In this document: in pieces, positions 1,901 to 46,459 of the stretch
How the letters are laid out: each line of letters opens with the position of its first letter
Position numbering within the stretch: position 1 is the stretch's first letter
NCBI GenBank assembly: GCA_016748015.1
Contig: JAAOMT010000239.1
Location: 158,356-222,355, forward strand
Source: Geosiphon pyriformis uo1
Lineage: Eukaryota > Fungi > Glomeromycota
Direction of reading: 5' to 3'
DNA length: 64,000 nt
Notes under the pieces: generated by a model
What the model saw: the letters and a program-made list of their open reading frames with translations, nothing else
Databases searched by the model: none
What the model was told of the DNA's origin: nothing
Translations under genes and position numbers: made by a program

Positions 1901-3152
1901 CTAAAACTTCATATTTTTGAAATTTTGAAGATGGTAACGATAGCATTGTTTAGGAGTTCTAGTACCAAGAGATTGAGAAATTTTTAACCAGTTTTTTCCC
2001 CATTTCAAAAAAGCTGCTTGGAAGGTTGCCATTTCTTTATCACTGAATGAACCACTATTGATACTCATTCGGTTTAAGCCTAAAATTGAAATAAAAATTA
2101 TATTAATCTAGCTTTTGGCAAAACAATAATTTGACGGAAATATTACCTGAGTCTTGTGAAGACTTTAATAAGCCTTTAAATTGCTTCGCTTTTTTTGTAC
2201 CAATACTTATAGGTATATTCTTCTGATTTTTTCCTATTAAATGGTGGGCTTTTGAAAAACTATTTTTTTCTTCATCACTCCAGTAATATTGATTCTCCTG
2301 CATATTTTTTGGATGCGAAGGATAAGTAGGATGAATTAGGGAACTAGAGCCTGCAACCTTTGGAATTGTGCTTCTTTTAAGAAAAAACTTTTTCATTATC
2401 TGCCAAAGAGGAAGCTTTTTCTGGCTATCAAGATTCAATTTTTCTTTTGCCGAGATCAAGCATTCCTTTCTTGCTTGTTCATTGTCTTTTGCTCCAACTA
2501 ATCTTGAAATTGGCATCCGATTACGAAAGGTAAATTTCTGAATGTCTTCTTTTAGTGATTTAGCCCAATATTTTTTGCACTCCTTCTGTTTGTTGATAGG
2601 TGCAGGTGGTTTTTCCAATGGTCTCCTGGCCATTTCAAACAGCTCATATTTTTCACACCATAGACATAGTTGAAGGGCAAAAAGTTGGCGAACAATATCT
2701 TCTCGTTCTTGCAAATCTTTTGCTTTCATATCTAAATTAATCACTATTCGTTTAATGATTGAATCGTTGAAAGTAAAACAAAAAAATGATCACATGAATT
2801 CTGAGTCACCAATTTCATCTTGCGATTCAAATTTGGCTAAAACCTCAAGCGATTCTAATATGAATTGTTCAGATCCATGATCATTTTCTATTGACATGTC
2901 TGTCGCAATCGACGCCAATAATGGTGGATTTCCGCTATCAATACTTGGATTGGTTCCATCACTTTTAGATAATAATTCTTTTCTCGTCCGTATCAAATTT
3001 TTAGACTTCTTAGAGGGGTGATGTGAAGCTATTGAAGCAAATGATTGAATGCTGCGTCCAAGTCCAATACCAGTTTTATATATTTTACATTGATAGCATA
3101 TGAGCTTAATAAAATTTATTTTAAATCCCAGGAGTGAAGAAATATTTTTCAT
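1901..3152 (-). CDS. Myb/SANT-repeat protein (paralog A), basic presequence-like N-terminus
   Basis: Exons 3152-2810, 2743-2147, 2079-1901 join in frame. One degenerate repeat (WSDEEKNSFSKAHHLIGKN) and one clear repeat (FSDKEMATFQAAFLKWGKNWLKISQSLGTRTPKQCYRYH), the latter in a last exon missed by the ORF track. Confidence 0.8.
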
Positions 3153-4806
3153 AGTTTACGATGTTAGATAAAATATTTGAAATTTAATAGGCTAATTGAG
3201 CTAAATGATTTCCCATGGGTAAATGATCCAATCAAATTTTTTAGACAGAGATCCTAACCTTATATATACATTTTTTACACAAGGGCGAAAACTAAAGTAC
3301 GTAAATATTTTTGTTTATCTTCGATAAAAGGGATCAATATGTAAAAATTATCACACTTTTCAGTGGCTCAAATAATAGTAACATTAATTAACCACACCAA
3401 ACTTTAGTAACGACGTTCTTTTTGTCAACTTCAACGTTTAGTCTAAAAAACAAGCATTATATAGTGTCAAAATTTTACTTTGAATTTTTAGACAAAGAAG
3501 AAATGACATGTACAAATACCTATTCACAGAATAATCCAGAGTAACGATATTATTTTCGGTAGTCAAGACACGAGTATTTGATGGCAATTGTGAGCGGCTA
3601 AAAAGCTAAACAAGGAAAAGATTATGATAGAACACATATTCGAAAGAAAAATTTTTAAAATTTTATTATTATCCTCATTACCTTTTCCTGAGAGACATTC
3701 TTAGGTGGGGTCTTTCCATTCTCAACAAATATTTTACCAATCAAAACGTTCCATTTTTGGCATTTGTTTTGCTTTAAAATTGTAGACATATCCTCTTTGA
3801 GCTTTTAATAAAATTTTATTGAATTGATAAATTTGCACAAGAAATGAATGCTTTTATAGGGATTCGAAAGTAAAAAAGAATATTCGTAGTAACGTCTTGT
3901 ATAACCAGATGGAAAACCGGAAAGTATAAAACTTTTATCATGACAATGGAGATTGTTCTCATGTGGTGATGATGATGCAGTTTGTCATAAGATTTTTGTT
4001 TATTAAGGTTTTATTTCAGTCGCTGCATGAAACTAAAACAAACTTGTTTGAGTGCTAAACCATTTTCCCAAGAAAGTTTGACGCTACTCAAGATTCCCAT
4101 TAGTAAAAAAATTTGTGATGAGTCAATTGTCCCCGAAATTTGTCAAAGAATTTAAAATTATTTGTGGGTAAACTCCTAAGAGATGAAACCGGGGTCTTTG
4201 GCTAAATTTCTGTTAATTTTAGAACCTTTCTAGTTAAAACCGTTGTTGTGTTACATAAGTTCATGAGACATTTTTTTCAATATTCGATCCTTCTGACCTT
4301 AATGCTTTAAAAAATTCGCTGGCCGAAATAACTGCGGATTTTCAAGTGATCCAACAATTTTCAATCATAATTGTGAACAGACGAAATTTATTATCGAATA
4401 GAAAATCGCAGGATAAAAAACCTATTGAATTTTAATGCTTCGTGAGCTGCTTCTACTATGTAATATTCCTTGTTGCATGCGTGTAGAAAATAGTTGGATC
4501 ACACTTTGTCAGAGCATTTAAATCATGAGATTTAAGAGAAATTTCCAAGCAAAAGTTTTCAGCCTTTTCCCATTCAGAATTTAGTGCTTCCATAACTTTC
4601 GTTTAAGTCAGCCGAACTTGACCACGTGTTGGAAATCAGGATGTTTAATTAATCAATTAGGTTTTCAATCTAAAGTGACTAATATAGTAACCCCTTACAT
4701 TGAGCTGATATTCTGAAGCCAATAGCTTCAGAAAATCTCATATTACCCTTTTTTAAATTAGGAAGCTTCAAATTTCTTTAGTTCGGCCTCATTCCAGATA
4801 CTTTGG

Positions 4807-5907
4807 TTAAATTTCATTTTTAGGCTTAACTAAAAAATTACGAGCATATTTTAAAATTTCGAGAAAAATTGCAAACCCATTATTAATCGAAAAAGATTAC
4901 CTTGATAATTCTGGAAAAAATATTTGCTACACTGCTTTGGTGTTTTTGAGCCAACAGCATAGGAAATTTGAACCCAATCCTTTCCTAACGATTTGTATGC
5001 TTTATGAAAATTTTCTTTCTCTCTCTCGTTCCAGGACCTGTTTATTCTTGCTGATTTCAGATCATAAACATAACGATTAATCACCGAGCCTTCAGTTCGC
5101 TTAAGAAGTTTTGAAATCATCGACCATTTCCGGCCTTCTTTTTCGACCATGTGATGCAAAAGATCAACTTCATCTTTGCTCCACTTGCCATGTTTTTCCG
5201 CCGAAATGACGTTCCATCGTCGCCTAGCATGGCAATTGGTTTTTGTTCCAATTAATTTGGAAATCATCACCCAATTTCCAACACCAAAATTTCGAACCCC
5301 TTGACGCAATAAATCATCTTCATTATTAGTCCAGGAACTCCGGTATTTTCTAAAGTTTTCCGTAGTTTTAGGAGGGTTGCTGGATATATTGTTAGGTTTT
5401 ATTTCAACGTCCACCAAACCCATTAACTGAAAGAACATTGACAATCTGCTATAATCTTCTTTTGTAAGCTTCACTGTCTTCGTTAATTCTAATTGTAATT
5501 CGAGATATTCAACCAATATAAACATATGAGTCTCAATCGTTTAACTATGATGGAATATATTCACCTTTTAAATTAGTTTCTTGCCCTCTATCAAGTGATC
5601 CTTGCTTATTTCTAATTGATTTCTTTAATCTTTTTGATTTGCAATCAAGCAAAAGTTTCGATAGAATCGAAGCAAATGATTCTTCTTTGACATAATCATC
5701 ATTTGCACTTTTCACCTTTGCAAAAAACTCATCCACTATTTCCCCATTTGATTTTTTGGATCTTGGGTCAAATTCTATGGGTAGATCTCGCACGATGGAA
5801 GCAAATGAGCGTATAATAGGTTGGTGATTTCCAAAGTGAGTGAAAAACTTATTATTAAGTAGATAGTTAAGCGGAAAACCTTCTAATGACCGGAAATACC
5901 GGTTCAT
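4807..5907 (-). CDS. Three-repeat Myb/SANT protein (paralog B), presequence-like N-terminus
   Basis: Exons 5907-5565, 5488-4901 and probably 4829-4807. Repeats WTNNEDDLLRQGVRNFGVGNW, WSKDEVDLLHHMVEKEGRKW and WNEREKENFHKAYKSLGKDW...KTPKQC. Confidence 0.85.
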
Positions 5908-8900
5908 TCCGATACAAATGATTTAATTTAGAATGATTAGAAATATGGTAAAGAGAAACCTTTTTTTGATGATGGTCGATATTCATGGCAAATCTTTTCA
6001 TATTTATCAGGAGTGAATTGCTATTTATAGATAGCAATGATTTATTGGTTGCAGAATGATCACCTTTAAATATATTTAAAATTAGATACAATATTTAATT
6101 GGGAAGTTAATTAAATAGTTATATTAATTGAAATAATTCAGATATCATTTGGGAAAACAATAATATTTAATTTTTATTTTATGACAAAAGAAGAATCCTA
6201 TGGATTTTCAAAGATGATATTTTATTTAAGCCTATTAATAATATATTAATTCGAAAACTTATCTTTAGTATAGTGAAAAATTGAACAACAAGCGTTATTA
6301 GAAAAATTTTGAGATCATTTTTTTAATATATTATCAAGTCAATTCTTAGATTCCCAAATTTTGTATTTAATTTATTCATTCATAAAATATTTTAAATGAT
6401 ATTGCAAATAAATTTTAGAAAATTAAGAAACATCAAAATCCAAGTATTTAAAATTATAAAGGCAATAAAAAGTGTAAATATAATATAATGAATTTATTCA
6501 ATTTTTTTTACATTGGAACTATTAATATATTCATTGGAAAAATAATTAATCATAAAAGCTTTTTATAACAAAATATGTTTAAAATATTAAAATTTGTTAA
6601 AATTATTTTTGTTTTTAAATTAGCATAAATATAAAAATATTACATTATTGGTAACTATGTAAGTTATAAAATGTATAATAAAATCATAAATATTTTTACC
6701 ATTAATCTTGACAGAAAATGATTTTCTGTAATGTAATTGGTTGAATGAATTTATCTTGATTGTTAAAAAAACTTTTTTTTTTTTTTACCAAATTTGTGCA
6801 CATCTGTCCAAAATCAAAATAAAAAGATGGTATAAGTTTTTACCACTTTCAAAGCACTTAAATAAATAATTTAAAATTTCAGTTTAGAATATTTAGCAGT
6901 ACCATTTATCATTACACGGTTATTTTATTTTATTAGGAATCTAGAAAAATTTAATCTCTTTCTATTTTTTGTCCAGTGACAATCAAAGCTGTTTGCTATA
7001 AGTGAACCATAACTTTTAATAAATTAGCAGATATCCTAATTCACTAATTTTCTCGGTTGGATGCCATATATTTAGTAAAAGGTTTAGATTTTTACGCCTT
7101 TATACTTTTTCTAGTTTAATTCATCTTTTTAAAAGAAGGAATAAGTTACTTTAATTTCATTTAAAATTCGTTTAATCATAGTTCAAAATTGTAGGGAATT
7201 TAATAAAAACAATAGAAATTAATATTAAAAACCAATATTAATTGATTTTCTTGGAAAACTTTTTCGATAACGATGTTTAGAAAAGTTTTCAACAAGGTAC
7301 TATACATGGTGATGAATGAGAATATTCATAATTTGATACAAATCTTTGTTTGCATATTCAGCCTCTGTTTTAGAATTCAAATCGGATCGAAAGAGAAATA
7401 TGCCAGCCTTTTTGCAATTCGATTCTGTTAAATTATTTTTAAAACTTTATCATATCGAAAAAACTTTAATCGAAATGAGAATTTTTGTATCAGCTCTATC
7501 AAAGAAGGATAGTTTTAATAATATATAATCTTGAAGAAATTCTGAAGCTTTTGTATAGACTATCTCTATACCTAAATTTAAGACCAAGATGCCCGTAAAA
7601 TTTTGCTGGATTCTCTAATTTTAGATATTTAAGATTATCTCTATTATCCAATTATGCTTTTTGACGTAGCCAAGACTTTATGATCCTACTCAAAATCCTA
7701 GAAACTTCTCACGGTGGTCTTGAAATTATAAAAATCTAGTTTGAATTTTAGTTACCATGGATATTCATCTGCAAACATAAATTTATTAGTTTTGGTTTTT
7801 TGATTAATTAGTTTTTTATGGAAACTTTCAATATTCTCTAAAAAAAAAATTTTTCTCCTAAAAGAGAAATATTCATTTTTCTTAAAAAGAATTTTCTCAA
7901 CATGCTTATTGCTTATCTTTTTTGAGGCTGGCGTATGGCCATAGATTGTGAATCATGACCCTATAGCTGTCTATAAAATGGAAACCTAGATCCGCTTCTA
8001 ATTTGGGTTTAGTTTAACCTGAAAAAAAATTATAAATAGGAAAGTTTAATCTATTTAGATCAATGCCGAATATATTGTGTATGTCATAGATCAACCGGTC
8101 ATTATTGAATTCTAAAATAGGTAAAAAGTAGCATTTTTTCTCCTCCGTTCGAAAAGGTAAACTTCTGAATATGACCAACCTCTGTTAAATGAGCTACCTT
8201 TAATTTTATTTTTGAAAAGATGTTATTATTAATAAAATGTTCAAAATTCAGAGTAAATTTTATTACTTTGAATATATAATAATAACTAAAACTTTCCGCT
8301 TTGTAATTTAAAATTATATCTTGAAAAAGTACCAATTCTTAAAAATAATGCCTCCTAGACTTGATCAATACCTGATTTATAATTTTCAAGATACAATCAA
8401 ACAATAATTGAAACCTAATCGAAGATTTTTAAAAGAAAATTGATAATATTTGAAAAGTATTACATACTAATATTGTATATTTACTGTGTAGTTAGAAGGG
8501 ACAAACAATTACTAGTAAAAAAAATAAGGTTTACAAGCTCTTGAGAATAATTTTATTTGTTTTTTTTAAAAAATTCTTACTTAATTATCTTATCTTACAG
8601 CTAAATTCCTAAATTTTTTTGGTCATAAACAAACGATGGCATGTATGAAGATGAATTGATGTTTTTCTAAGAGTATCACAACTTTTTCCATCAGCAAAAT
8701 ACATCAGCTTTACTTTTATGAGAAATAATTCTTGTTCCACAATTTTTACAACCATTATTCATTGATTTTTTGTGATTAATAACGTATAATGGTGATTCAA
8801 AGACAAAGAAAACAAATCATTTATTATCTCATTAATTACCTAATTAATGATTTAGCGATTGATATATTTAACGAATTTAAAAAGGTTTTCTATTATGTGT

Positions 8901-9534
8901 CATCAATGATTTGTAACAAATTTTTAGGAATATTCTATCTGCCTTTCAGCTTGGGGTCGATGGTTGGAAAGATTATTTTTCTTTTAGAAAAAACATAAAT
9001 GCTTTTTGATTAGTTGATCAAATAACAAATGATTCTGAGAATTTGTCTTTGGTAAGAACAATAGTAATTTTCAAGAAATCTAGTTTTTCGCTATCAAACT
9101 TTTGTGCATTCATCGATGTAATACTAATCGAATGAGAATACGTTTAATATTTCTTATCTTCTTCAAAAAAGTAGCGCAAACCTAATAAAAAAATTTAAAA
9201 AGATAATTTATATTCAATTTAAATTTCCTAAAACAATATTGAACTCCCATGCTATAAACAACAAAAGGACCCAAATTGGTTCATGAAACTGAAGTTCAAT
9301 GCTCCTTCTTGTTAATATTTTATGATCTGTACTAAAAATTATATAGTAGCTACTTTTACTTTGCAGAAAATCACAAGATTCTTAACCATTGTGGAGATAA
9401 ACCTGGTGAAGACTTGTTTTGCGATCAAGAATTGCATAAATTTTAATTGGAAGATAAGAAGATTAATTAATACATTGGAAAAAAAAAACAAATATTTTTC
9501 ACTCCATCCCTAGTACAGGTTATCCTTCCAATGA

Positions 9535-9591
9535 GAGAGAGAGAAAGAAAGAGAAAGAAAGAAAGAAAGATGGAAAGAAAGAAAGAGAGAA
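9535..9591 (+). repeat. (GA)n/(GAAA)n purine microsatellite
   Basis: gagagagagagaaagaaagagaaagaaagaaagaaag... read directly. Confidence 0.85.
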
Positions 9592-11564
9592 ATTTAGTAA
9601 TCAAATATTGTTATTTAATTGTTTTGTAGCCTATCACCCATATTTAATATATTAAGCTTCTGTTGTTATGTTTTAATTGTTTGTTTCTATATTGAAGACT
9701 AAAAACTTTTGAATAAATTATACCTATAAAATACCGGTTGTTATAATTATTTTTATATCTATTTTAAAAAGCCTGGGACCGTTTAAAAATATCCTAAAGT
9801 TCCTTACTAAGCAATCTTTTGATCCATATTTAAAAATCCAAATTTCCGAATCAAGTCCATATGTTTGAATTTTATTCAAGCACAAGAAATTCTTTAATCA
9901 AGATTGGAAGCGAACTTAGAGTTTGTTTTGACATTCTGCTTTTATTAAACAATGATCCGTTATTTATTTCCTTTTAGAAAAGATTGCTACTTATAATACC
10001 AGGTAAAATTCTGTTTAGATGATCATATTTTAATTAAGATCTACTTATAATATATTTGTTAATCTTTTCAGGGGTTTTAAAACCGGAATTTGTCTTCTAT
10101 TGAAATCAAAGTACACTTTGCAATCTAGCATTATTAATTCTTTGTGAATTAGACAAATTTGAATTTACAAGTCCAAAGTTAGTGCTGCAAAAACCGCAAT
10201 TTATGAATAAACTTATTGAATACAATAGCAATCATATCATAACAGATATAACTCAGAATCGCTATTTTTTATAGATAGTAGCAAACCTATTCCGAAGCAA
10301 CTGAAGATTGGTTCTTGACCATAATAAATATGCTTGATGTGATTATAATTTTTTATTTGTATATTATATACTTTCTAAACGCAAAAATTTTTAACAAAAA
10401 GCTTTAATTTTTGGAGATTTTAGATATATTTTAAAAACCAACTTGGATAGATTTTCCATATTAAATAAGGAAAGCTCAATTAATTTAGTTATCTTTAATT
10501 CGATATTTAATATTTTACAACAACGGGTATAATTTGCTTGGTAAAAACAATTTACACCACTTCTTGGCAACCTCCACAGGTGATGCTGATCAAATTTTAC
10601 CTTGTACTGTATTATAAACAAACACAAATCTTTAGTGTGGAAAGGGAAAGATAGAGGATTGTGATTGCACTAATAATTTTTAATTAAGTGGGAAAATAAT
10701 TATTGATTAGTTGACTCAAGTAACTAAAATAAATTTCAATTTCAATCAAAACCAAACAACTAAGCAGAAAACAATACTAATAACAATAAAAAATTTAAAT
10801 CAATCACCTGAAAGAAAACCAATACTAATCTTTCAAGAAAAAAAGCAACCAAATGACTGATCAAACTTCAATAATAAAAGAATTTTTTTTAATTATTATA
10901 GCAAAAAGACAATTTTTTTTTTAAAAAAAAACAATTTAAATAACAAATAAAATATGTACTATAATTATAAATTAATTATTTAATTTAAGAAATATTTATT
11001 TGTGATAATTTATTACACTATTTAAAAATTAGTTATAGTTATTGAAAAAAGAACGTAAAAACTTTTTAATTAATTAATTAAAAATTATATTATATTTATG
11101 GTTTATTATTTTTATTATTATAAAAAAAATATTTTTAGATAATTAATAAAAAATTTATTTTAATTTTTAAATCCCATTTTTTTTTAAATTATTATAATTA
11201 TTTATAATTTTTACAATTGATCATAATTATAAAAATTAATAATTTTAATTTTTTATAAATTTTAAAGCTCAAATTATTTATTTATTTACTTTACTATAAT
11301 AATAAGCACCAATATTTAAAATAAACATACATTATTAAGTTTTGGTTTTTTCAATGTTGTACAATTGAAAAATTTATTAATTTTAGTTTATGTCTTTGTT
11401 AATTAAATTAAATTGTATCAAAAAGTATTTTAACTTGTATTTAACCTTTAAAAAATTTAATTATCAATCTGATTATGCATAAAAGATGACTTGTTTATTA
11501 TTTTAGCAATTTTTATCTTAAAAAAACCAAAATAAAGAATTTTCAATAAAATAAATTATATCAA

Positions 11565-12430
11565 CAAACCATATTGAAAAATCAATTATTTGAGCAGTTA
11601 AAAAAAGATTTGTACAAGTTACTCCTGGATAAATATTTGCCAGAGATTTGGGTGAAAACTTTTGTCTCTCTTTAAGTTTTAAAATGTTTTTTAGGGGCTG
11701 AATAATTTTTCTGAAAATTTTGTTGCCCCGTCATTCTTAAACATTTCTCTAGCAGTAGGACAATTTTATGGATCGGTATCTCAACACCTTTAATTAGCCT
11801 CACATAGCAAGGTGGAAAAAGAGGGAAAGTAATTCCAGATTTGTGGCCATTTAAAATATTCATCACGAGAAGGTGATTATGAGAATAATCATGAAAGGGA
11901 GGCATCCATGTTGCCAATTCACATAATAGCATGGCAAAACTTAAGATATCACCAGCCGTCATAAACTTTCTCCTCTTAAAACTTCTGATAGAATGTATAG
12001 ATAGACTCCATATATTTACTTTTTCCCTGTTACCTTTGCTGTTATTATAAATCCAAGGTCAGCAATTTTTGCTAGAGAAGTTAGTAGGATGTTGCCCCGA
12101 ATATAGATCACTAATTCAATATAAAATGACAAAATGCTTCGCAAACTCCATATTCGAGTGTGCTAGCGTTTTGTGTACTCGCGTACATTTTAAAGATATA
12201 AAATAGGTATTCAAAGTCATTAGTAGTATTTAAATAAGGAGATGAATATAATAATAATAATAATTGTTTATATATTATTTCTTTAAAGATATCTTCATAA
12301 ATTTTATTGCTAATTCCTGTTCCCAATTACATGATGTTTTATTAATTAATCCATCAATTACTGTTGCTCGATAATTTTGTACCCAAATCCTCTTGTTGAT
12401 ATTCGACAAACTCTCCATTTAATCAACCAT
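11565..12430 (-). pseudogene. Decayed TKL kinase paralog
   Basis: Reverse complement matches the intact kinases (TAGDILSFAMLLCELAT..PPFHDYSHN, TQNASTLEYG, the LTAQ..DFS tail, the same intron) but has frameshifts, stops and internal deletions. Confidence 0.85.
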
Positions 12431-12960
12431 GGTAATTCAATTTCAAAATTATTTTATTTTAAAAGATACTCCTTCTTTAAGTATATAAAGAAATCCCAAA
12501 ATTTTTATTCCAAGTATAAACATTATCGGGTTTACTTATTAATAGAATAAACTTTTTCTAGTAAATCTCCAAAGTCATTGCTAGTGACTTTAAAGAGATT
12601 TAAAGGAAATATTCATCTTATCAGCTATGATGAAATTCATAATGCTATATATCCCTTTTTAATGATTAAAGAAATAGAAATTAAAGATTATTTACTTTGT
12701 TTTTACACGTTGAATCCACCTATATATTTGATCCTTGTGTTAATTTTGCCATTTAAAATAAGAAATTAATAGGTGCAATAAAAATATATTATGCATGTAA
12801 TAGTTTTTAAATCATGCTAAAATTTAAAAAGTTTTTTTTTCACAGATCTATAAAAACGCTGAAAATAAAACCCTTGACAAAACATATTTAGTAATAAAGG
12901 TATATAAGCAGAAAAACTTGTTTGGCGTTTTTTGTGTACTATAATTTGATTCGTTAAACT

Positions 12961-13035
12961 ATGTCCACATTGAGGGACAGTATAAATACAAACTCCGCCT
13001 TTTAAAATGTTCCTTTCTAAACATAATATAAATAT
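12961..13035 (+). promoter_or_regulatory. Conserved core promoter of kinase paralogs, with TATA-like element (TATAAATA)
   Basis: cacattgagggacagtataaatacaaactcc...aacataatat is nearly identical to 39767-39832 upstream of kinase 2, about 100 nt before each ATG. Confidence 0.55.
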
Positions 13036-13091
13036 AATCTTTCAAATAGCCTCTTCCCATAAGATTATATTCAATTTCATCCACACAAACC

Positions 13092-14734
13092 ATGGAAAAC
13101 CATGAAAATAAAAGAAGTCGTCCAGAAGTTCATGAGTGCAACGAGTGTTCTTTCTGTCAAGAGAGCATTCGAGATGAATGGAATAAGTGTAGAGCATGCA
13201 TTTCCTTATTTTTAAAAAAAAATTACAAAGACTTTTCAAGTGGCAATAAAATAGTAGACGAAATAATTAAGAATCCAATTTATAGTGAGCATGAAATAAA
13301 TTATTATGAATGGATTCCATGGAATCGTTTGTCAAAGGTCAACAAAAGTGGTGAGGGAGGGTTCGGTACACTTTATAAAGCAACATATATTGATGGATTC
13401 ATTGATCAGTTTAATATAAAACATCATGGTTCAATGGAATATAAAAGAAGAGGAAAAGAGGAAGTAGCAATAAAGTTTTTAAAGTTATCTTTGCGAACCA
13501 GTGATGAACTCTTTAAAGAGGTAATTAAATTATTATTATTATTTATTATTGTTTAATTACTTAATTTAATTAACAATTTATCATTCTTTCACCTTTGGTA
13601 GTTAAATATTCAAAGATCCATTCTCATTAATAATGTAAACACACAATTTATCTCTAAAATAATGGGAATTACACAAAACGCCATAACACTCGAGTATGGA
13701 ATTGTGATGAAATTTGCCGAATACGGAGACATGCGAAAGTATTTATCCACAAATTTTCATTCTACGAGTTGGTCTGATAAATTAGAATTCGCGTGGCAGA
13801 TAGCTAGTGGACTTTTAACAATTCATTCTGCTGGTATGGTTCACCGTGACCTACACTCGGGTAACATCCTACAATATTACACTAATAGGCTATATATTGC
13901 AGACCTTGGATTATGTCAACCTACATGCCATGAAACATCAATAGGATACTCAAACTTAAAAACAACAACAGGAAAATACGCAAAGAAAAAAAATATATAT
14001 GGAGTGATTCCATACATTCCACCAGAAGTTTTAAGAGGAGAAAAGTTTACAACAGCTGGTGATATTTATAGTTTCGCCATGATATTATGGGAATTAGCAA
14101 CAGGAAAGCCTCCCTTTCATGATTATTCTCATGATCAAATACTTATAATGGCTATTTTAAATGGTCAAAGACCTAAGATTACCTCCCCAATTATTCCACC
14201 TTCTATCGCTAAGCTAATTGAAAAGTGTTGGGATCCCAATCCAGAAAATCGTCCTACCACCAGAGAAGTTTACAAAAGATTAGAAAAACTTGATAAATAT
14301 AGTTTTGAGTTTCAGAAATCAGAAAAGTACATGAAAGAACATGTGAAAGGCGATGACTTGACAACAAAACCTTCAGAAAGATTTTCAAAATTTATTAAAT
14401 TCCTTAAAAGAACTATAAAACACAGGGAGATAACAAAAATATCAAGGGTAATAATTCATCCAGGAGCAGTTTATACAAGTCGTCTTTTAACTGCTCAAAC
14501 GGTTGATTTTTCAACAGGTTTCTTTCATTCAATTTATAAATGATGAATTTTTATTTGATTAATTTATTACTTTAATTAAATATTCTAACTTTCTTTTATT
14601 TTATATTATAAAAGGATTAGTCTATTTACCTCAAGGTAAGAATTTAAAATGTTAGAATTTGATTATTTATAATTGTTTAACACTTATTTATTTTTATTAT
14701 CTCATATCTAGAAATTCAAATTTTAAACTACTAA
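13092..14734 (+). CDS. Tyrosine-kinase-like (TKL) protein kinase with N-terminal Cys/His cluster (kinase 1)
   Basis: Exons 13092-13520, 13602-14517, 14615-14635, 14712-14734 (3' exons inferred). GEGGFG, VAIK, HRDLHSGN, DLG, PYIPPE, DIYSF and CW..P..RP are intact. SSGN..DEII and EWIPW are typical of Glomeromycotina TKLs. Confidence 0.92.
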
Positions 14735-21200: not shown

Positions 21201-24200
21201 TAACAAGATCAATAATTAATTGTGAAAACAACAATTTTTTCTTGAAAAAAGATTTTGAATCAAAACAAGAAAAAAAATTGATTCTTGACTAAACTGAACA
21301 GAAGCTTTTACTTTAATAATTTTTATAATATTGATTTTGTGAATATAAATGTCTGAAAAACAAATTTAAATTTTTTCTGTTCAATTGAATTTCCAGTTAA
21401 ATAATAAAATAATTAACTGGTCTCATGCCAGCTTTTTAACAAAAGGTTTTATTCTATTTTGAACAAATATCTATCATTTTGAATCATAATCAAATTCATG
21501 CATAACATTGGATTCATTTCAGCATGCGAATTGCTAAAATAAAAATCACAAATTCCATACTAATGTGGCCTGAAATATTTTATTCAAATTTCTCTCAATT
21601 AATCCCCATAATCCACCAAACCAAAAGAAATAATTCAATCGAGTCACAACTATATTTCTCATTATGAATACATAGAATAATTGTATGACCAAGTTCCAAG
21701 AGATCGATTAGTTTTTTTCCATCCCAAATTTAAAAAAAAAACTTTTTACCAAATTTACTTTTAATCATTTTATGACTTTTATTTTATTTACAATCATCAG
21801 CATATAAATTGTTTAACTTAAAAATAATTACATATAATTTTCACACAAATATAACTTTTTTAAAAATTATAAAAGAATAACTTGAATTGGTTGCAACTTT
21901 TAAAAGATGATCTTGACACAAAAATCAAGAGTATACCTTTCTAATACAGAGAAAAACAGTACTGACACACCATATATACACATAACAACAAAAAACTCAC
22001 AGATAGAGAATTTCTGCAAAACTTTTTTTACTAACAAATACTATTACAATGTTTAAAAAAGGAATTGGCTCTTTTTATATACATATAGCATTTAATAATG
22101 AATTGACAATTATCTCTGCGTCCCAAATAGCAAAAATACAGAGAGTAATTTCTCCAGTTATTAGAAATAAACGCAACCAATACTTTTGATAACCATTAGG
22201 AAGACAGAAACACTTTTGGTAATGCTGGCACATAAAGATATTATGTTTTTTACTCAAAAGTTTGATTCAGTTATTGTCTCATTATTTAAGGTATTGGATA
22301 TAATAAATTGAAATAAAAAAATTACGCAAAAAATTTTCAAAAAATATTCTGCTGGGTTTATTATTATTTTTATCAACATCTGATTTCTAAGGCCAAGCAA
22401 TAAGCTGTTACAGCGTCAAACATTCTTTTTGGGATATTAAGATATTCCTTAAATGCTCCTATGGAATTCATTAAAAATAATTAACTTTACTACATTTATT
22501 GTCATTATGAGGTAAAAAAAAGTTTAATTTCATTAACCACTTTATTATCATTTGAAAAGTCTGAAAAGTTTTTCAAAAAATCAGAAATGGCATATTGCAT
22601 GCAAATTCACCCAATTATTTTGAATGTTTTTTTAACATTCATAGAAGTCATGAGCTTTTAAACAGGTTGCTTTAGTTTCAAAATTTTCCATAATGTAAAT
22701 CAAATTTGCATAAGTATTTATGAAAACGTTTCTAAATATGATTCAGATAGTTCAAAATTCGAAACCTAATAATTAAAAGATTAAAATCCATACTAAATTG
22801 ATTGTATCTCAATTGAAAAACTCCAACTCAAATGCTGCATTCATTGATGAAATCATGTGAAGCCCCTATATTAAGTGGCTTGTTTATTATTTCAGCATTT
22901 TTTTTCACATTTGACATGTTACAAAATGGATATTGAAGAATTGATACTTTGAAAATTCAAGAATGTATTTAGTTTTAATATACTGATACTTTCCATTGTT
23001 TTAAGGCTATCAAAATTCTATTGTTTCAGATGATTTGGCTTTCGCAACAACCATTTTAAATTGAAAAATAGCCCTTTTTTACAACACAGCTACTGATAGC
23101 GTCTCAAGTACAATTATATTATAATCTTATATTTCAAAATATTTTGTGCTGAATTATTTTAAACTGAAATGATATTATCTAAAGCTTTGAGGTATATACT
23201 ATTAAGCTTAAAGAATTAAATTTTTTTTATTATAAATTTAATAGTCGTAATACAAAATATTTTTTTAGGAAATAATTGTGGCTTTATTTTAATTTAGTTC
23301 GTGACAAACCATATTATAAAAATTTTCTTTCAATGGTTAATTAAAATTTAAAAATAATAATTTTTGATACTCGATTATAATAAAATATTATAGAATTAAT
23401 TATACATTATATGATTAATAAATGTAATATATAAAAATATAACCAATATTCTTGAAGATTAAAATCAATTGTAAAGTTTTAGAATTAAAGATAACTAATA
23501 TATTCACTTCAGTTTTTAATTAGCGCTGGTTATAATTTTTAGATAAATGTCATTTGAATTTTAGAAAATAATTATAGATATAACAGCAAAAAATATTTGA
23601 GGGATAGACTTGCAAGTGAAATTTATTCAAAGTAAATAACAATGAATTATAGATTATTTTAGATTTGCAATGATTAACAAATAAGTTCTCAAACTATTGT
23701 AATCTTAAAGATTTATTGAATCTTTATTTAATTATTAATTTTTACAATTTCGCTAACATTAATTTAAAATAATTGAATCATTGATTATAAGGTCTGTTAT
23801 AAAAAAATATGATATCTTTGCTTTTCTTTAACTAATTGTATTTATTTCTGCTATCAAGTGCAGAAATATGAGCTTCAATTTTTTTAAACATTTCGAGTAA
23901 TCATATGTTAATTTTTGCTTGATATTTTATTAATATCAAATATTTAAAAGGGTAAAATCTTTTAAAACATTCTGTTACATTCAATAAAGTATAATTAAAA
24001 TGCATGTAAATATTTTGAATTGACTTTTTAATAAAATATTTTAATCAAGATTTGCTGATAAGCAATGTGTGTCTGAAAATAGTTCTATAAATTAGAAACT
24101 TAAAAAAAATGTTTTTTTAAATATAAAAATTATTAGAATTACAAAATAATTTGCAAAGTTTTAAATTTTTTCATATAAATTATAAAAAATAATATTTTAA

Positions 24201-24312
24201 TTTCATGTAAATAAATTGGAATTAAAACTAAATAAAAGGATCTAACATAATTAAAAAATATTAATTCGATCTTACTAATAATAGATACACATCAGTCATA
24301 ACTTCAATAATT

Positions 24313-24792
24313 AGAATTACAATATATGCTGAAACATTCAAGTATGGGGATTGTGATGGATATGGAAGTATTTATCAGCAAATTTTCATTTTACTCGTTA
24401 ATCCGATAAATTAATGATAGTTCATAGACTGAATTATATTAATTCTGCTAGTATGGTTTATTGTGACCTACACTCTGGCAACATCCTAAAAAGTACAAAT
24501 ATATGGTTAGAAATTGGAGACCTCGAATTATGTCAATCAGCAAATTATAATCACCAATAGGACTCTAAAAAGCAACAGCAAACAATAAGTTACAAGAGGA
24601 GGAGAAATTATATGGAGTAATTACATATGTTCTACCCAAAGTTTTAAGAAAAGAAAAGTTTATTTCGACTGGTAATATTTATAGATATGGAATGTTATTT
24701 GAGAGTTGGCAACACGGAAGTCTTTCTTTCATGATTGCTCTCATAATCAAATCCTTATAATGGCTATTTTAAACAAAAAAAGACTTAAAAAT
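24313..24792 (+). pseudogene. Decayed TKL kinase catalytic-domain fragment
   Basis: Aligns to kinase exon 2 (gctgaaacattcaagtatgggattgtg; tgtgacctacactctggcaacatcct; tatggagtaattacata; ctcataatcaaatccttataatggc) with deletions and many C>T/G>A changes. Confidence 0.85.
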
Positions 24793-26408
24793 AGTGATCA
24801 AGAATATAAGTAAATTGAAATTATTGTATTGACCTGGTAACTAAAAAACTGATTCTGAATTTTTATAGTTTTGGGAAGTCTCACTTATATATTTTCAAAA
24901 AAAATCAATAATTTGGTCAATTATTAAGTTTTTGATCAAGTCAATAATTACATTAATGACTTATTCTTAAAAATAAGATGGCTAAAAAAGATAATATCAG
25001 TGGTTAATACATGTAAATAAATATAATTTGATAATTAATATAACTAAAAAACTAAGAAATTTAAGTATGACACTATTTTTATTTTAATAAACATATTATT
25101 ACTGCTGTTATTAAAAAAAGTGGTTGAATTTTTTGGAATTTTACTAAAATTAGTTTTTTTCTGTTTTTAATAATAGAATTTTTAAGTTATTTGTTAAATG
25201 TATATGCCGTTAATACTATTTTTTTATATTTGAGATATATATTTTTAATTTTTGTATTAAAGACATTTATTAAAAGTTCCAATCAGTTTTAAAATTAAAA
25301 AAGTTATTTTTTACCTAAAAATTCAATTTTCAATTATTTTTTAAGTTAAACAATTTACACTTTTAATAGTTGTAAAATAATAAAAAAATTCGATTCAAAT
25401 TTTTCTTCAAATCTGAGATAAAAATAAATTTTCTTAAAAAAAAAAAGCTTTTTTTTTATACATTTTAAAATAAAACTATTTTGAGTTTTAATTTGTAAAA
25501 ATATTGGTACATTTCTAAAGACTGAATGTAAATTTTTTATTAAAAATTTTTAAATAATTTTATTATATATTTATAATTTTTTGTAATTGCTTTTTCAATT
25601 ATATATTTTTAATATTTAAAATGATTTTTAAGAAAATATTTCAAAAATAATTTAAAATATATATATATATCCAAATCTTTATTTAAATTTATTAATTATT
25701 CATTTTAATATGATTAAAAATGTTATATTATATTATTTTTAAACTTTTTACTTTTTGAATTAATTTACACACATTAATTCATATAACTAATTTAATAATA
25801 ACAATAAATTTTTAATTAAAAAAAAATGTATATTAAAATTAAGATTCTAAAATAGTAAAGTAATTCGTTTAAAAATTATTTTTTTTTCAAGTAAATTGAT
25901 TGCAAAATATTGTAAAAGTAACAATTATAAAGACATCAATTAAGTGATATTAAAATAATAAAGAATTTTTATGTGTATAATCAACTTATCATTCACGAAT
26001 TTTGTGCTATAACAAGAAAAATAAGTGTTTAAAAATTTAATTATTTCCCTAATGAAAAATCTTTAATGAATTAGCATAATTAATATATCATGGCATCTAA
26101 TATAAGATTGATAGATCTATAAAATTAAAAAGTTTTTTTTTAATAAGCTTTACAGAATTACAACTATGCTATACTATAAACTTTACTGCGTTCGCTCATT
26201 CTTCTAAAGAATCGAAACCCTTTAAATATCAAGTGCGTAATCCTAAGAAAGCGATTTCAATTCTGAAGGTTTATTTCAGCTTATTGCTAGGAACCCTTAG
26301 ATAATAAAGCTAAAAGGCTATAAACGGACATAATTGTCCAACAAATAAAAAACTAAAATAAGTAGATAATCCTAACTAAAACCTGAAAAGAAATCAATAA
26401 TCCGAGTT

Positions 26409-27145
26409 TCACGCCTTTGGAGTTAGATTGACGTTTCGGATGCTTTAAAAGAAGAGACTTAGTGAGAGCCACGATCACATAATATAAGTATAAATACTCA
26501 ATTACCTGTCTTCAATACTCATAGCCTTGTCGGTACGACTCTAAGATATAAACCATAGTTATATATCTAATTTTTTAAGCATCAAAGAAATACAAAATAA
26601 TCCACCCACATCAATACGAATGCTAGTGCAAACACGAGGCACATTCATCTTGTGAATATGTTCTATGCATTGTTGAATGACGTCCATAACATCATGCCAG
26701 TTTCCTTCTTTTGATTGCAAATGAATGATTGAATTAAATTTATTTCTTTAGATTGTTGCTTTCAATTGCAGTCTTACCGAGATTGGTTCCACTAGCATGA
26801 AGGTTAAATTTTATTCTTTACCGTAGAAAGAAAATTAGTCGAGGGCACCACTAAAAATTAACTGTTAATTTGTAAGTTGTACTTGCCCTTGTTTTTCCTT
26901 TAAGATTTTTTGGACCTCAGCAATGTACTATGTTGAGAACAAAAAGGTTTGTTAATAATAATTGAGGCCAAGTTTTCTCGAAATAAAAATAAGAATAAAT
27001 CAGCTATAAAAAAAAAGTAATCATTCATAAAACGTGGATCTGTGTGGAAGCTAGAGCCCAAAATAAATTTTTTCAATATCACCTCTGAAGTGTTCACTTT
27101 GGTACCAACAGGTACGATTGAAAAGTCAGCGAGGATTGAATTCAT
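26409..27145 (-). CDS. ECM15: UPF0045/MTH1187 (YkoF-like thiamine-binding fold) protein, Ecm15-like
   Basis: Exons 27145-27083, 26927-26887, 26815-26778, 26707-26610, 26540-26506, 26442-26409 give MNSILADFSIVPVGT..YIAEVQKIL..FNLHASGTNLEGNWHDVMDVIQQCIEHIHKMNVPRVCTSIRIDSRTDK, the family pattern. Confidence 0.85.
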
Positions 27146-28889
27146 GTTTAGTACTGGGACTTGATAAAAGGGTAAGAAATTCCAAGTGAAAATATATATA
27201 GGGGATTATAGCAGAGAGACAACTTAAGGAAAGATCAAAGTTAAGGGAACAGGGGTTAAATATGTCTCAAACATTGGAAGAAAATTTCAAAGACTTTTTG
27301 ACACATAAGCTAAGGATGATGTCAAAGGTAATAAATCATGAGCTCAGATGATAGAATAGTGCATATATATATTAAAAATGGCTGTGAATTCAATTTACGA
27401 AATAAATAGAGCGTGATAGAAACAAAGTACACACGTAATAATGCCGTTTCATATTTCACATATGTCTCAAAATTTTAGGTATGATTTTTTTAACCTATTG
27501 AGTAAAATAACATTTTTATAAGTTTTATAAGGGCAAGATCCAAGTTTAGAAGGCACATATTCTATTCACAAAAAATACTTTAATAAAAGATATCGTTAAA
27601 ACTATGTAAAAATTGTCAGTTTTTAAAAAATTTAATGAGGCTTCAAAAAATAGGTTGATAGAAATTTCATGATTACCAAAGAAAAATATTAAAAAATTTA
27701 GGCTATAACATATTTCATTTAATGCATTCTCATCCACAAAACAACTACAAAGAGACTTTCCGTTCCGCTCCGCTCTATTTCAAAGGAAAATTCAGACGAA
27801 AGGGTGAGGTTCAAAAAGCAAAATAAATTCTAATTTTCTAAATTGTTTCTCATTCATGAAAAAATCTAAATTGCATAAAAACTAAAAATAACATACTTTA
27901 ATGTCAATTTCAGTAATGAAAATTTTAATATTTTAAATGCTTAAGAGGATTATAATTTATCTTAGATCGTCAAATCTTTTAAATATGTAAACTTTCATCT
28001 TATTATAATAGGAAATGTAAAAATTTAATGTTTTAAAGTTAGGTTTTGAAGATCAATTTAAATTAAGGAATGCTCTTGAAAATTCGAGGCTGTTTTACCA
28101 CGTTTTGCACAAAATTTTAATGATATTTTGAGTTTCAACCTTAATTTTGCGGTACAGAATTGAAAGAATCTTCTTTTCAAAAAAGAAAAAAAAATTTTTT
28201 AAAGTTAAAATATTTATGATATTACAGATAAAAATATCATCTTTTAATGCAAAAAAAAAGTTTAAACGTAGCATGTGGATATTTCTGTATTAAATTAGAA
28301 GCCATTTAGTTGAATGATTTTTTACTTAAAAATTTTTTTAAAAGGAAAAAAATAGTTGAAACATATAATAGTACTTTTCCAAATATATTTAGCTTTAAAC
28401 ACTCTTACTTATATAATTTTAAGATAGCATGGGAATTTAGTGTATGAAATTTTAGGTAAAATTTTTATTTTATTTAACTTAAATTATTTTTTAAACTGGC
28501 CAAGTTTTTCTAGAGTAAAGACTAATCATAAACGTATATATATATATTAAAAAGAAAATTTCCTTTAAAAAAAAAAAAATTTAGGTTTTTTAAATTTGTG
28601 TCTCAAAGGGACTAACCGCTAGTTCGAAATAATATTAAAATCCCTCTTATATCAATTATTTTATTATCGACCTTAACAGTCAAAGTTAAAATACTTTAGA
28701 TAGATTAGTCCACAGATAGTTACCTTGAAAATTCCCACGCGACTATTATAGCAAATCGGCGTCAGAAAGATTTTACAAATAGCAAACACTACTTACTTTT
28801 TTGCTCCAACTATGAACTTTTTCACAATTCTTTTTGCTTACATTTGCAGAAAAGTTTATACAAAATGCTTTGATTCTACTGTCAAACAA

Positions 28890-28891
<2 letters not shown>

Positions 28892-28936
<45 letters not shown>
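28892..28936 (+). repeat. (TTA)15 microsatellite
   Basis: Direct read. Confidence 0.95.
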
Positions 28937-28937
<1 letters not shown>

Positions 28938-29937
28938 AAGAAATTTTTAATCTAAAATATTCTAAATTTAGTTTTTTTTATTTCTTCTCCACATGTGGAG
29001 CTAGCTGGTAATTTTTACCACTTTTCCAATTTTTCTTACTCAAACTTTAAATAAATCTTTAAGCAAGAAAGTGAACGGAAATTTTTTTTTTTATTATGAT
29101 ATCAGGTTTCTCATAATCTCATCCACAAGAGTAATTTATAAAAAGGATCAATACAGTGATTTTTCAATAATGTTGGGTAAGAACCTCAACATTAAAACTT
29201 CTTTTTTTTAATCAAAAAAATTTTTTTTTTCCTAATTAAGACCTACAAACGCATACCCACTATTACATCTAATGCTATCCATTCAACAAGGAAACTACTT
29301 TTGACTGTTTTTAGTCGTGAGACCCAATTTAATTTGTAAATTTAACTTGAATTATACTTGGTTGAAGTTAACCTGCGGGTTCAATATATTTACTTAATTA
29401 ACGTTTAGAAATTCAAGAGAACCGTCAAACATCATCTTGATCATGATCATCGATCAACATCTATCAAACTAATTTATTTTGTAATCAGCACAAATATCAC
29501 ACTAAACCAAAACTCGCCCATGAGAAAGCAGGATTTTATAAAGTTCTCTAACCTTTCTCTAGGCCCCTCATTTTTTTGACAGCTACCATCTAACCTCTGT
29601 ATATTCTCTCCCACGTAGAGCATAAAACCGGAAAAACTCTTCAAAAATATCTTTTCCTATTAAATAGAACTGAAAACAAATAAACTCGAGATACGCCAAG
29701 CTTGAAAAAGAAACTCAACTTCTGATCAAATCGTGAGAACTATATAAATTCTATGTCACCATAGTGACAAAGATTAAAAATAGCGTCGAAACTTATTCTC
29801 CCAGTTTCATTTTCTCTAAGAACCAAAGTGTTTACACTTAAAAGTTTTATCGATAAAGAGGCGTTGACTACCTAAATTTTTTGAGCCTTAATCTTTTAAA
29901 TCACTTTACCAACTCGAACCTCACAAAATTCAAAGAA

Positions 29938-31303
29938 ATGGTCTTACTAGTGTTAACCGATCGTATTCGTAAAGCCGTCTTTCTCGCTCTGGAATCATCA
30001 GAGTTTGATAGTTCAGCAAAAGAAAGGCTTAGAAATTACTTGAAAAGAAGAACTTGTTTACCACTCGATTTATTGAAAGAGGTTTCCAAGTTTTTGGTCA
30101 GTCGTGATGGAAAACTGGGTAAAGAGATTGGTAAGTAAAAAAATTTGAGATTTTTGAAATTTACAATTAAACCTTTCCCTCGCACTTTTTCCTTCTTCGC
30201 TCCTACTTTCGCTCTCAATTTCCTTGAAAATATTTGCCTATTCTTTTCCCGAATTTCCTTTTCATCACAATACATTATCAACTCAATTTATTCCAAAGAT
30301 GGTTAATCACAAACTGTCAAAGCCTGATGTTTGATTATCATCTACAAATACCCCGTTTAAGGGAATGTTGATTGAATCTCTTTTTTCTTTTGTGCAAATC
30401 GTTAATCATTCCCCTTTTAGCTCTTTCCATTTTCATACACAATTTTTTTTCCCACCCTTTATTGACGAATGATCAAAACACCTCTTAAAAGCTTGTATCT
30501 TATTCTTCATTATTATCTACGTCAGGTTTATCAAACTATTGGCTACATGATTTACTCTGTGGTAGTGGAATTTACGTCGAGCCTAAGGAAGAGAAACCAA
30601 GGGTCTGTATGATGAAAATGATGCTCATAAAGATTCTTATCTTAATAAGACGCTAAACTCTTTTAATTAATTCAATTCGAAAATAGAATCCTGAACTAAT
30701 AGCTCGTCTTGAAGAAATTCTGGCCGAACAAGCAAACAAAGAATACTCACGTATGATAGCCCGTGTTTCATCTTCTTATGATGTAGAGACTTTTAGGCTA
30801 TTGGATACAGAAGAGTTTGCAGCAATGCGAGGTCAACTCACCGCCATAATTAACATTACATTCACGATTGTTGCTGTCTTTGCCGCGGTATATCATGTGG
30901 CCCAATCTGTCACTGGTGATACTGGAATGGTAAGCATATTGATGAACCTTTTACTAAAACTTATGTCATTAACGCGTATTAATTTGCTCATTTAATTAAT
31001 AATTGATAGCGAATACTGCTTGCTGGACTTGGGGGCATTATTGTCGGTGCCGCCGAAACATTTTTGTACATGAGATATCTGAGCGGCTATGGTGAAACTA
31101 AAAGGAAAGAAACGAGCACAAAAAAGATCGAGGCAGTTGAGAAAGAGAAACGTAAACCTCCACATCGACGAGCTACTTCCATTTGTTCCTCAAATGGATC
31201 ACGGGAAAAATCAGATGCAGCAGTTCCAAAAGTTGATAATAATTCCAAGGCATCAGCTCTTACCAGTACGGTGCGACCGATTATACGAACGAATTCACTT
31301 TAA
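29938..31303 (+). CDS. VMA12: V-ATPase assembly factor Vma12/Vph2/TMEM199 homologue
   Basis: Exons 29938-30130, 30526-30602, 30687-30929, 31010-31303. WLHDLLCGSGIYVEP, NPELIARLEEILAEQANKEYSRMI, two TM helices and AETFLY. Confidence 0.85.
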
Positions 31304-32669
31304 TTGTTTAATCGACAAGCTCAACTTCGAACTCCTCTCATATATGAAGTAACACTTGCTTGCTTCGAGGAAGTCAATATTTTTGACCCGCAAAAATTTC
31401 TTGCTTCACTATTACCACTTCTGAATCGAATTTAGCTAATTTCAAAAAAAAAGAACCTTCTTTCATCAATGTGCTTATCTTTTTTTCATGTTCAAAACGC
31501 AATAATAATATCCCAAAACGTTTCAAAATTTACACAACTAATATCAATTTACTCCTCTTGTAAATATACCTGTTTCATTTAAAAATAATTATATTCACTT
31601 ATATAAAGGCTTTTCATCTAATATTTCTTAAATATATACAAAAAATACCGGAATTTGTCCAAAGATTATCGTACACTTTCCAAAATCCGAAATTCCCATC
31701 TTGTACATTTTATCCCCAAAAGTTTCTTTATATTAATCACTCTTTAAAATCTTCGTATCTTCCTTTCTGTTCTGTTCTGTTAAAAAGTATTCTGTATCAA
31801 AAAAGTGTTCGTTTTACCGTTTTAGTATTAAGCTCAATTTTTGAGTGGAATAATTTTCCGTGTTAATTTGTTTCATTTCGTTTCGTTCCATTGTTATTCC
31901 TCTTTACAATCGTTCTAGCGCTATCCTTTTCTGTTCTTTTCGACGTATGATCCTAGACAATAAAGTTTCCTCTCAGTTAATCATGCTTTTTTAACAAATT
32001 CATAATAATTGTTATTATTACGAGTGATGCTAAGGTTAAAATACTGATTGGAATAAACAAAGTATTATTGATCGTCAGCTTTGCCAGGTTAACTCTAACT
32101 TAAGCAGACCTAATGATTACCCAGGTAATTAAATGCAGCCACTATAATATATTAAATTAATTAATTAGAAAAGTTATACCCTATTCACATACAATGTACG
32201 TCTATAAGTGTTGGTCCAGATGTTTGTATTCAAAAATCGGGAGGGTTTTGATTCCAGATAAATTGAAAATTTAGTTTCTCCTAAAAAATACCAGTTTGGC
32301 GTGATCTTTTGTTATTGAATTAAGGTTTTTTTTACAAGAAATTGAAAATCCTTTGGTAACACCATAATATTAGTGATCAGGAACGATAGTTTTTTCGCCA
32401 TATGACCAAAAACAGTATGTCGATAGGTTGGTTATTAACAAAACTTTCTTAATTAAAATGCTTTTTTAGGAAAGAATACAAGAAAAAACACCTGGATCTT
32501 TGTCAACCTTTTTTTCAGCCACAGAATTTTGAATCTTTCCTTTTGGACTCCCAAATTTTTATTTGAAAGATTAAAAAATGGTGTCACCATCTAAAAGATT
32601 AGCGCAGAGAAATAGGTATTCTCACTGTCCCATATATCGATCCGATTTTTGAAATTTCGTTATTCTAAA

Positions 32670-33791
32670 TTAGGGATCAAAAGATTTTCTCAAGGTTTTC
32701 ATATGCTTAGAATTCCTGTTATAAAAGTACTGAGAGCATTGCTTAGGTGTTCTAGAGCCAACAGCTTGGGAAATCTCCTGCCAATTATTTTGCCATTTTT
32801 GGTGAGAACTCCACAGTATCTTGAGTTCGGCTGCACTCCATGGGCCTTTGCGGATCGCCTTTTGGGGCAGACCTGAATTCAATTAAGACAATTTTAAAAA
32901 ATGCTGCCAAGGTTTTCCTCTAAAAACTGCCCCCGATACAAAATTTACCTATATCTGTTGAGGACTTGAAAATATTTCGACATTTTGAACGTCTTCTTGT
33001 AGCCACAGCTCGAGAAAGTATCGCCCAGTTTTCTCCAGCTAGAAAATTTGGCTTCCGAAAAATTTCTTTGACTTTTTTCTTCCAAACACCTTCATTATTT
33101 GGCACACCTGTCGAGTTCAAGTAATAGAAATTATTTTTCTGGATTATCCTCCAAAATATGATTCTATTCCGATCTGCTTTTTTTGTCGTTGAAAGCTTTT
33201 TTTTTTACCTTTTGGCTCGATCGTCCTCGAGATCAAGTCCAAACTCTCGGGAACAAGTTTCTCATGACTTTCACTGGGTAAATCACTCTTCGACATAGTC
33301 GGGAGCTTTCTATCCCACTCTTGTTTTTTGAAAAATGTCGTAGGTTCCTCAATTCTTCCAATCATTTCTTGATTTTGCAAATTTTTTGCTTCCATGTCTA
33401 ATTTTTGTTGAAATTCAAAGGTTGCTGAAAAGTAGTTTTTTCAAATCAAGCAGAAATTATGATTTGAATTTTCACCAATTTCATTTCGTGTTCTCCATTC
33501 GTTTGATGTTTTATCATGGTTTGTTACTATTTGAGATTCCATCGAGGTCCATGAACATTTTGCCGAAATATTTTGATTCTCTGGTTCCGTTTTCGAGTAT
33601 AACTTGGTCTTTTTTTGTTCGGAATTCTTACATTTTTCAGACGGCTGATCTCGGGCAATGGAAACGAACGATGGCATACTCGGTTGAAATCCGAAACCAG
33701 TATTATACCTTTTGCATGAATAACATGATATGCGTCCAATGGGGTTTGTTACCGGCCGGAGTCGTGCCAAAGATTGACAATTTTTTTTCAT
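32670..33791 (-). CDS. Myb/SANT-repeat protein (paralog C) with an apparent frameshift in an A10 run; possible pseudogene
   Basis: N-terminus homologous to paralog A (CYSCKRYNTGFG vs CYQCKIYKTGIG) with the same intron after EIG. Repeats VWKKKVKEIF..GENWAILSRAVATR and GPWSAAELKILWSSHQKWQNNWQEISQAVGSRTPKQC. The frame shifts at 33197-33206. Confidence 0.7.

Positions 33792-46415: not shown

Positions 46416-46459
<44 letters not shown>

Follow-up and report, generated by a model that had tools for sequence, protein, structure and literature searches.

The 64,000-nucleotide stretch of the Geosiphon pyriformis genome analyzed here (the window; contig C788, AT-rich, about 27% G+C) carries three related genes for Myb/SANT-repeat proteins, called A, B and C below, and a fourth paralog, D, lies outside it. 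The genes share an unusual first exon, whose N-terminal part the first-pass annotation of the window had taken for a mitochondrial presequence in A, B and C. Our analysis of the gene structures, the first exon and the Myb repeats indicates a family that is probably nuclear and presumably keeps this N-terminal region on the working protein; the mitochondrial proposal is weighed against it below.

Gene structure and age of the paralogs

The three genes are read from the minus strand, at the positions given before. Gene A (1901 to 3152) encodes 372 amino acids in exons 3152 to 2810, 2743 to 2147 and 2079 to 1901; gene B (4807 to 5907) encodes 317 amino acids in exons 5907 to 5565, 5488 to 4901 and 4829 to 4807; and gene C (32670 to 33791) encodes 297 amino acids in exons 33791 to 33476, 33424 to 33209, 33107 to 32949 and 32872 to 32670. 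The introns are of the GT-AG type and each spliced frame is open. The spliced proteins were used for translation, alignment, substitution and composition analysis, while the databases were searched exon by exon. The intron positions said to be common to the three genes are so for intron 1, which interrupts A, B and C in phase 1 at a homologous place, and for the last intron, which lies about 10 codons ahead of the final Myb repeat; however, C has one intron more than A and B, and B uses just 7 codons past its last intron.

A search of the whole assembly with a profile of the first exons of A, B and C detected paralog D (E 2e-5), which lies 51 kb upstream of the window; this match shows that the resemblance among the leaders reflects homology and not chance. 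D was modeled as a protein of 315 amino acids in three exons (1094 to 1334, 1412 to 1948 and 2031 to 2200 of excerpt L008 of contig C788), with the same phase of the first intron and the same last intron as A to C. An extra weak match of this profile (L006, E = 8) proved to be an unrelated open reading frame (ORF) of 417 amino acids. Between paralogs, the proportion of synonymous differences (pS) is saturated at 0.57 to 0.93, and the proportion of nonsynonymous differences (pN) in alignable regions is 0.24 to 0.46. The lower pN at saturated pS, together with the intact frames and splice sites, marks the genes as old and under purifying selection, and judging by their coding sequences A, B, C and D are functional paralogs.

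The first exon and its conserved motif

We define the leader as the segment from Met1 through the Phe of the SF motif, which amounts to 138 residues summed over A, B, C and D. The leader of A (residues 1 to 38; 3039 to 3152, minus strand) includes CYQCK at 3084 to 3098 and ends in QSF, with SFASIA at 3027 to 3044; it has no acidic residue, five Lys and one Arg. The leader of B (residues 1 to 35; 5803 to 5907, minus strand) ends in IIRSF, with SFASIV at 5791 to 5808, and its single Glu is at position 9. The leader of C (residues 1 to 42; 33666 to 33791, minus strand) includes CYSCK at 33711 to 33725 and ends in MPSF, with SFVSIA at 33654 to 33671; it has no acidic residue, four Arg and three Lys, and no Arg within 13 residues of the motif. 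The N-terminal motifs quoted in the first-pass annotation are thus all present, QSFASIAS at residues 36 to 43 of A, RSFASIVR at 33 to 40 of B and PSFVSIAR at 40 to 47 of C, as are the CxxCK elements of A and C.

The leaders had also been described as basic and nearly free of acidic residues. The lack of acid is real, with 1 acidic residue among the 138, and the first acidic residue comes at position 59 in A, 48 in C and 9 in B. The leaders are not richer in Lys and Arg than the rest of the proteins, however. The net charge of the first 40 residues is equaled or exceeded by 17 to 44% of all 40-residue windows in the same proteins, and because high basicity is found throughout A to D, charge is not a special property of the N terminus.

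The conserved block of the first exon can be written SF(A/V)SI(A/V)-x3-P-x6-SKKS. A survey of Myb proteins for SF(A/V)SI had been proposed; among the 36 Myb loci fetched from the Geosiphon genome the motif is present in A, B, C and D, but it is confined to those four. When a profile of the four first exons was compared by HMMER with 1.84 billion representative proteins, the matches were confined to public models, those of C and D; the first exon had no Pfam match, and an ESM Atlas look-alike search with the first exon of B gave no usable match. By these searches, the first exon is an orphan, known only in Geosiphon. AlphaFold2, given the first exon of A with the four-sequence alignment, returned a mean predicted local distance difference test score (pLDDT) of 48 and no confident fold, with a lone helix at residues 8 to 22 of pLDDT below 50. 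Two further ideas about the leaders were rejected. The leaders of other Myb subfamilies (P0005 and L017) look similar by eye, but hhalign did not accept them as homologs (E 0.09 and 0.5), and a zinc site built on CxxC is ruled out because Cys is absent from that place in B and D and no further ligands are common to A and C.

Conservation within the leader differs between pairs of paralogs, and in A and C it is high. Their identity is 44% in the leader, which includes a CYxCKxYxTGxG block, 42% in the final Myb repeat, 29% in the middle region and 36% overall, and pN of the leader codons is 0.36 versus a pS of 0.66. The start Met and the S-L after it fall into the same alignment columns in A, B and C. 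Additionally, in the MAFFT alignment the motif recurs in weaker form some 45 residues further along, preceded by acidic residues, as EESFASIL in B and LLASIA in A.

An in-frame ATG at 33842 lies 17 codons upstream of the aligned Met of C, in a weak context with T at position -3. If translation of C began at this codon, the added segment (33791 to 33842, minus strand) would contain one Glu and a hydrophobic stretch.

Myb repeats and their loss

The C-terminal Myb repeats with the signature IS..(L/V)G(S/T)(R/K)TPKQC, reported earlier for the three genes, could be verified in each of them, and the curated cut-off of PF00249 (24.4 bits) is exceeded in the final exon of A, in exon 2 of B and in the final exon of C. 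In A, the final Myb/SANT repeat is at 1931 to 2047 (minus strand; E 7e-10, 39.3 bits), and a weak additional repeat at 2178 to 2336 (minus strand; E 0.005) is also matched by the family profile. In B, three tandem repeats occupy 4914 to 5333 of exon 2 (minus strand; E 5e-27, 94.1 bits, three stretches). In C, the final repeat is at 32721 to 32840 (minus strand; E 7e-12, 45.6 bits) and a weak one is in exon 3 (32949 to 33107, minus strand), and the family profile matches both. A and C thus retain one strong and one weak repeat each, and only the last is well formed.

Exon 2 of B matches 71 places in the genome, spread over some 45 loci or more, most of them arranged in tandem (contigs C669, C507, C520, C310 and C596). 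Typical members of this wider family are single-exon genes with five Myb repeats, and the nearest proteins from outside Geosiphon are generic multi-repeat Myb proteins of metagenomes. The earlier view that the paralogs form a family with a lineage-specific expansion is therefore borne out, as the first exon is restricted to Geosiphon and at least 45 tandemly arrayed loci make up the wider Myb family. One locus of a different Myb cluster, between the Myb genes G9A89_007277 and 007279, is G9A89_007278 (204 amino acids), which has Pfam matches to both Myb and the DDE_3 transposase (PF13358); a transposon may have inserted there, or the gene model may be a fusion.

Three-frame translation of the sequence 3' of the stop codon of B revealed a dead terminal Myb repeat (4690 to 4806, minus strand). 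Its remnants, WNEAELKKFEAS, followed by a stop, and FSEAIGFRISAQCKG, have their homologs in the final exons of A, C and D and are interrupted by stops and a frameshift; B itself ends ahead of this repeat, 7 codons into its last exon. The repeats of B cover only positions 49 to 183 and 229 to 285 of the family profile, and the middle repeats of D are degenerate. Read from this repeat inventory, the clade of A to D stems from the five-repeat Myb family, and its repeats are being lost.

A probably nuclear family with a putatively retained N terminus

According to the above-described analysis, we regard A to D as a Myb/SANT family that is probably nuclear, with an orphan first exon that is basic, acid-poor and predicted to be disordered and bears a putatively retained SFxSI...SKKS block. 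The proteins would act as DNA- or chromatin-binding factors, binding being predicted from the Myb/SANT repeats, and the nucleus is the most likely place of action. The first exon they share is predicted, at low model confidence, to encode an intrinsically disordered, basic and acid-poor region, and the SF(A/V)SI(A/V)-x3-P-x6-SKKS block would stay on the working protein, for example as a motif that, together with a basic arm, serves in binding or regulation. We infer the nuclear location and the role of the motif from several observations. Myb domains are present, those of B being collinear with the DNA-binding domain of c-Myb, and all solved relatives are nuclear (c-Myb, Cef1/Cdc5, SNAPc4, N-CoR and TRF1/2), which supports the nuclear placement. 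In addition, a leader that is discarded after import would not be expected among the best-kept parts of a protein, so the conservation of the leader between A and C favors a retained region, as do the persistence of SFxSI in paralogs without the Arg, the composition of the leaders, their unexceptional charge and the lack of a confident fold in the first exon.

Alternative explanations

The reality of the leaders has to be considered together with the public gene models. The public proteins that match the contig of the window, both from Geosiphon pyriformis, are KAG9300663.1 and KAG9300648.1. The former corresponds to C, starts at Met38 and uses an acceptor 27 nucleotides further downstream than our model; the latter corresponds to D, has a different 5' exon and stops at the last donor. 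G9A89_023456 (599 amino acids) fuses B and A via intergenic pseudo-exons (ORFs at about 3438 to 3789): it starts at a Met inside intron 1 of B, joins the middle of the first exon of A and drops both leaders, and exon 2 of B, recovered via the family alignment, is 100% identical to part of it. The leaders are hence missing from the public models of all four genes, and the profile search brought up no transcript-derived protein with the first exon of A or B, as would be the case if, in line with the public annotation, transcription or translation began further 3' or from different 5' exons and the leaders were not in the proteins. We hold this to be quite improbable. The public model of A and B is an evident fusion through pseudo-exons, and its 5' ends carry little weight; the Met codons of A, B and C align; and the 44% amino acid identity of the leaders of A and C, with pN below pS at saturated divergence, makes it very likely that the leader codons are translated. 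It is even harder to believe, and in our judgment very improbable, that the genes are decaying, functionless duplicates whose N-terminal features are leftovers. Myb repeats are indeed being lost, as seen in the dead terminal repeat of B, the degenerate middle repeats of D and the one strong repeat left in A and in C, but A to D retain open frames over three to four exons, joined at canonical splice sites, even though their synonymous divergence is saturated, and pN is well below pS in most regions.

Mitochondrial import, as proposed at first, deserves the closest comparison. In this scheme the first 23 to 42 residues would be a matrix presequence. The processing peptidase would cleave behind R-S, Icp55 would then trim off the F, and the mature proteins would begin with A-S-I (V-S-I in C) and bind mitochondrial DNA or RNA; import might concern B and D only, or be part of dual targeting. 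Several observations weigh in its favor and against a nuclear protein with a retained N terminus. Acidic residues number 1 of 138 in the leaders versus 127 of 1163 elsewhere (p = 7e-6), and this depletion persists where B and D are unalignable, their identity ahead of the motif being 19%. The Arg:Lys ratio is 12:9 in the leaders versus 65:159 elsewhere in these Lys-rich proteins (odds ratio 3.3, p = 0.013). An exact R-x-F↓A-S site (the arrow marks the cut) is found at the right distance from Met1 in B (residues 33 to 36) and D (residues 21 to 24), and genuine Geosiphon presequences end in a like manner, with R-K-Y↓A-T in Hsp60 and R-N-Y↓A-A in Atp1. Furthermore, motifs of the type K(K/R)x(K/R) occur one to two times per protein versus about 1.4 expected from an estimate based on the Lys and Arg frequencies, so they provide no positive evidence for nuclear import. 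B and D also diverge as a presequence and a mature end would, with 19% identity before the site (35 versus 23 residues) and 59% across the 35 residues after it, the best-kept stretch of the pair. The maximum 18-residue hydrophobic moment of the leaders (0.38 to 0.59) falls inside the range of three Geosiphon mitochondrial controls (0.36 to 0.66), and the start of D (..NRPLPRYQ..) resembles that of Geosiphon Hsp60 (MNRLPRYF..).

The controls, Sod2 (C718), Atp1 (C463) and Hsp60 (C701), were read from the genome beside their conserved mature domains. They are only three: the first exons of GrpE, citrate synthase, Sdh2 and the M16 peptidases could not be confidently assigned and were left unused, and SSB and NifU were not found in a six-frame search. 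The three precursors have classical presequences of 34 to 46 residues, which indicates that the AT-rich genome has not altered the usual presequence composition. The leaders of the Myb proteins depart from them in composition: A, L, R and S together make up 24, 26, 29 and 39% of the leaders (24% in A and 26% in B), compared with 54% in Hsp60, 50% in Atp1 and 53% in Sod2; I, N, F, Y, G, Q and C make up 43 to 58%, compared with 18 to 26%; and Ala occurs once in 138 residues, so that the enrichment in Arg, Ala, Leu and Ser typical of presequences is lacking. The cleavage site is not shared either. The processing peptidase requires an Arg ahead of the cut site, at -2 or -3, but A has QSF↓AS with its Arg at -6 and C has PSF↓VS, and neither has another canonical site. 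The cut of Geosiphon Sod2 (..V-S-S-F↓S-T, as placed here before the conserved mature start) likewise has no Arg at -3. Across the four paralogs position -3 is R, R, Q and P while SFxSI is invariant, and because SFxSI is kept in A and C without the Arg, the conserved element seems to be the motif and not a cleavage determinant. The faster evolution expected of presequences is seen between B and D but not between A and C, whose leader (44% versus 36% overall), with its CYxCKxYxTGxG block, is kept as well as the Myb repeat. The second motif copy behind acidic residues points to a peptide motif that is repeated and not to a cut site, every solved homolog is nuclear, and a literature search found no mitochondrial Myb protein. 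No PTS2-like (peroxisomal targeting signal 2) or signal-peptide-like pattern was seen in the leaders, which were inspected for these by eye only. Taken together, import of the kind described, even if limited to B and D or to a dual-targeted fraction, seems unlikely to us. The broader proposition, that the leaders are real presequences and that Geosiphon sends a fast-evolving, tandemly duplicated Myb family into its mitochondria as the first such class in fungi, in parallel to the expanded restorer-type PPR and mTERF families of plants, we rate slightly lower still.

If the leaders are the basic disordered region of nuclear Myb factors, the family would be one more lineage-specific expansion of a kind common in Glomeromycotina genomes, and the practical value of the analysis would lie in the correction of four faulty public gene models. 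If, on the other hand, even B and D enter mitochondria, they would represent organellar DNA- or RNA-binders of a class not known from fungi, and would offer a route to studying the control of the mitochondrial genome in a cyanobacteria-hosting fungus. With exact coordinates and a candidate cut site at hand, the import idea can be tested directly.

Neighboring genes

Just downstream of gene A, positions 462 to 1537 (plus strand) encode the C-terminal portion of a transporter of the major facilitator superfamily (PF07690). The window also contains three genes for tyrosine-kinase-like protein kinases (13092 to 14543 and 39764 to 41335 on the plus strand, 45548 to 46967 on the minus strand; PF07714, E 1e-31 to 1e-39), the first two of which have the same two-ORF layout; these kinases are another family expanded in Glomeromycotina. 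A 673-amino-acid ORF at 60576 to 62597 (minus strand) contains 15 Sel1 repeats (PF08238, E 2e-168) and is overlapped by a long antisense ORF at 60656 to 62164 (plus strand).

Comparison with known systems

Among proteins of known structure, the closest counterpart is c-Myb. Exon 2 of B aligns repeat for repeat with c-Myb R1R2R3 (PDB 1H88) over 137 residues (E 2e-13), with the regularly spaced Trp residues kept, and c-Myb R3 is the closest solved structure to the final repeat of C (E 8e-7). Unlike c-Myb, A to C are short, have no recognizable transactivation or negative-regulatory domain and begin with an orphan disordered first exon; A and C have only one strong repeat, and the final repeat bears the (S/T)(R/K)TP(K/R)QC signature typical of the Geosiphon family. 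SNAPc4 (SNAP190) is likewise a multi-Myb-repeat protein, and the wider Geosiphon family has five tandem repeats. The sequence matches to SNAPc4 are weak (E 2e-4 to 5e-3), and the likeness is generic to Myb repeats rather than a sign of orthology. The Geosiphon proteins have 300 to 370 amino acids, unlike the roughly 1500 of SNAPc4, and a tandemly amplified family does not look like the gene of a single-copy core factor.

The leaders themselves invite comparison with the presequences of Geosiphon Hsp60, Atp1 and Sod2. Both have an acid-free N terminus of 23 to 46 residues that ends in an aromatic residue followed by A, S or T, and the Arg at -3 of Hsp60 and Atp1 recurs in B and D. The Myb leaders differ in being rich in I, N, F, Y and G; that of A is Lys-based (five Lys, one Arg), the Arg at -3 is missing from A and C, and between these two the leader sequence is conserved. 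At the level of gene families, the restorer-type PPR and mTERF proteins are organelle-targeted helical-repeat families that expand in tandem arrays. The Geosiphon Mybs may be compared with them by analogy, as a clustered family of fast birth and death with nucleic-acid-binding helical repeats and N-terminal leaders; the Myb fold and family are different, and organelle targeting in Geosiphon is putative.

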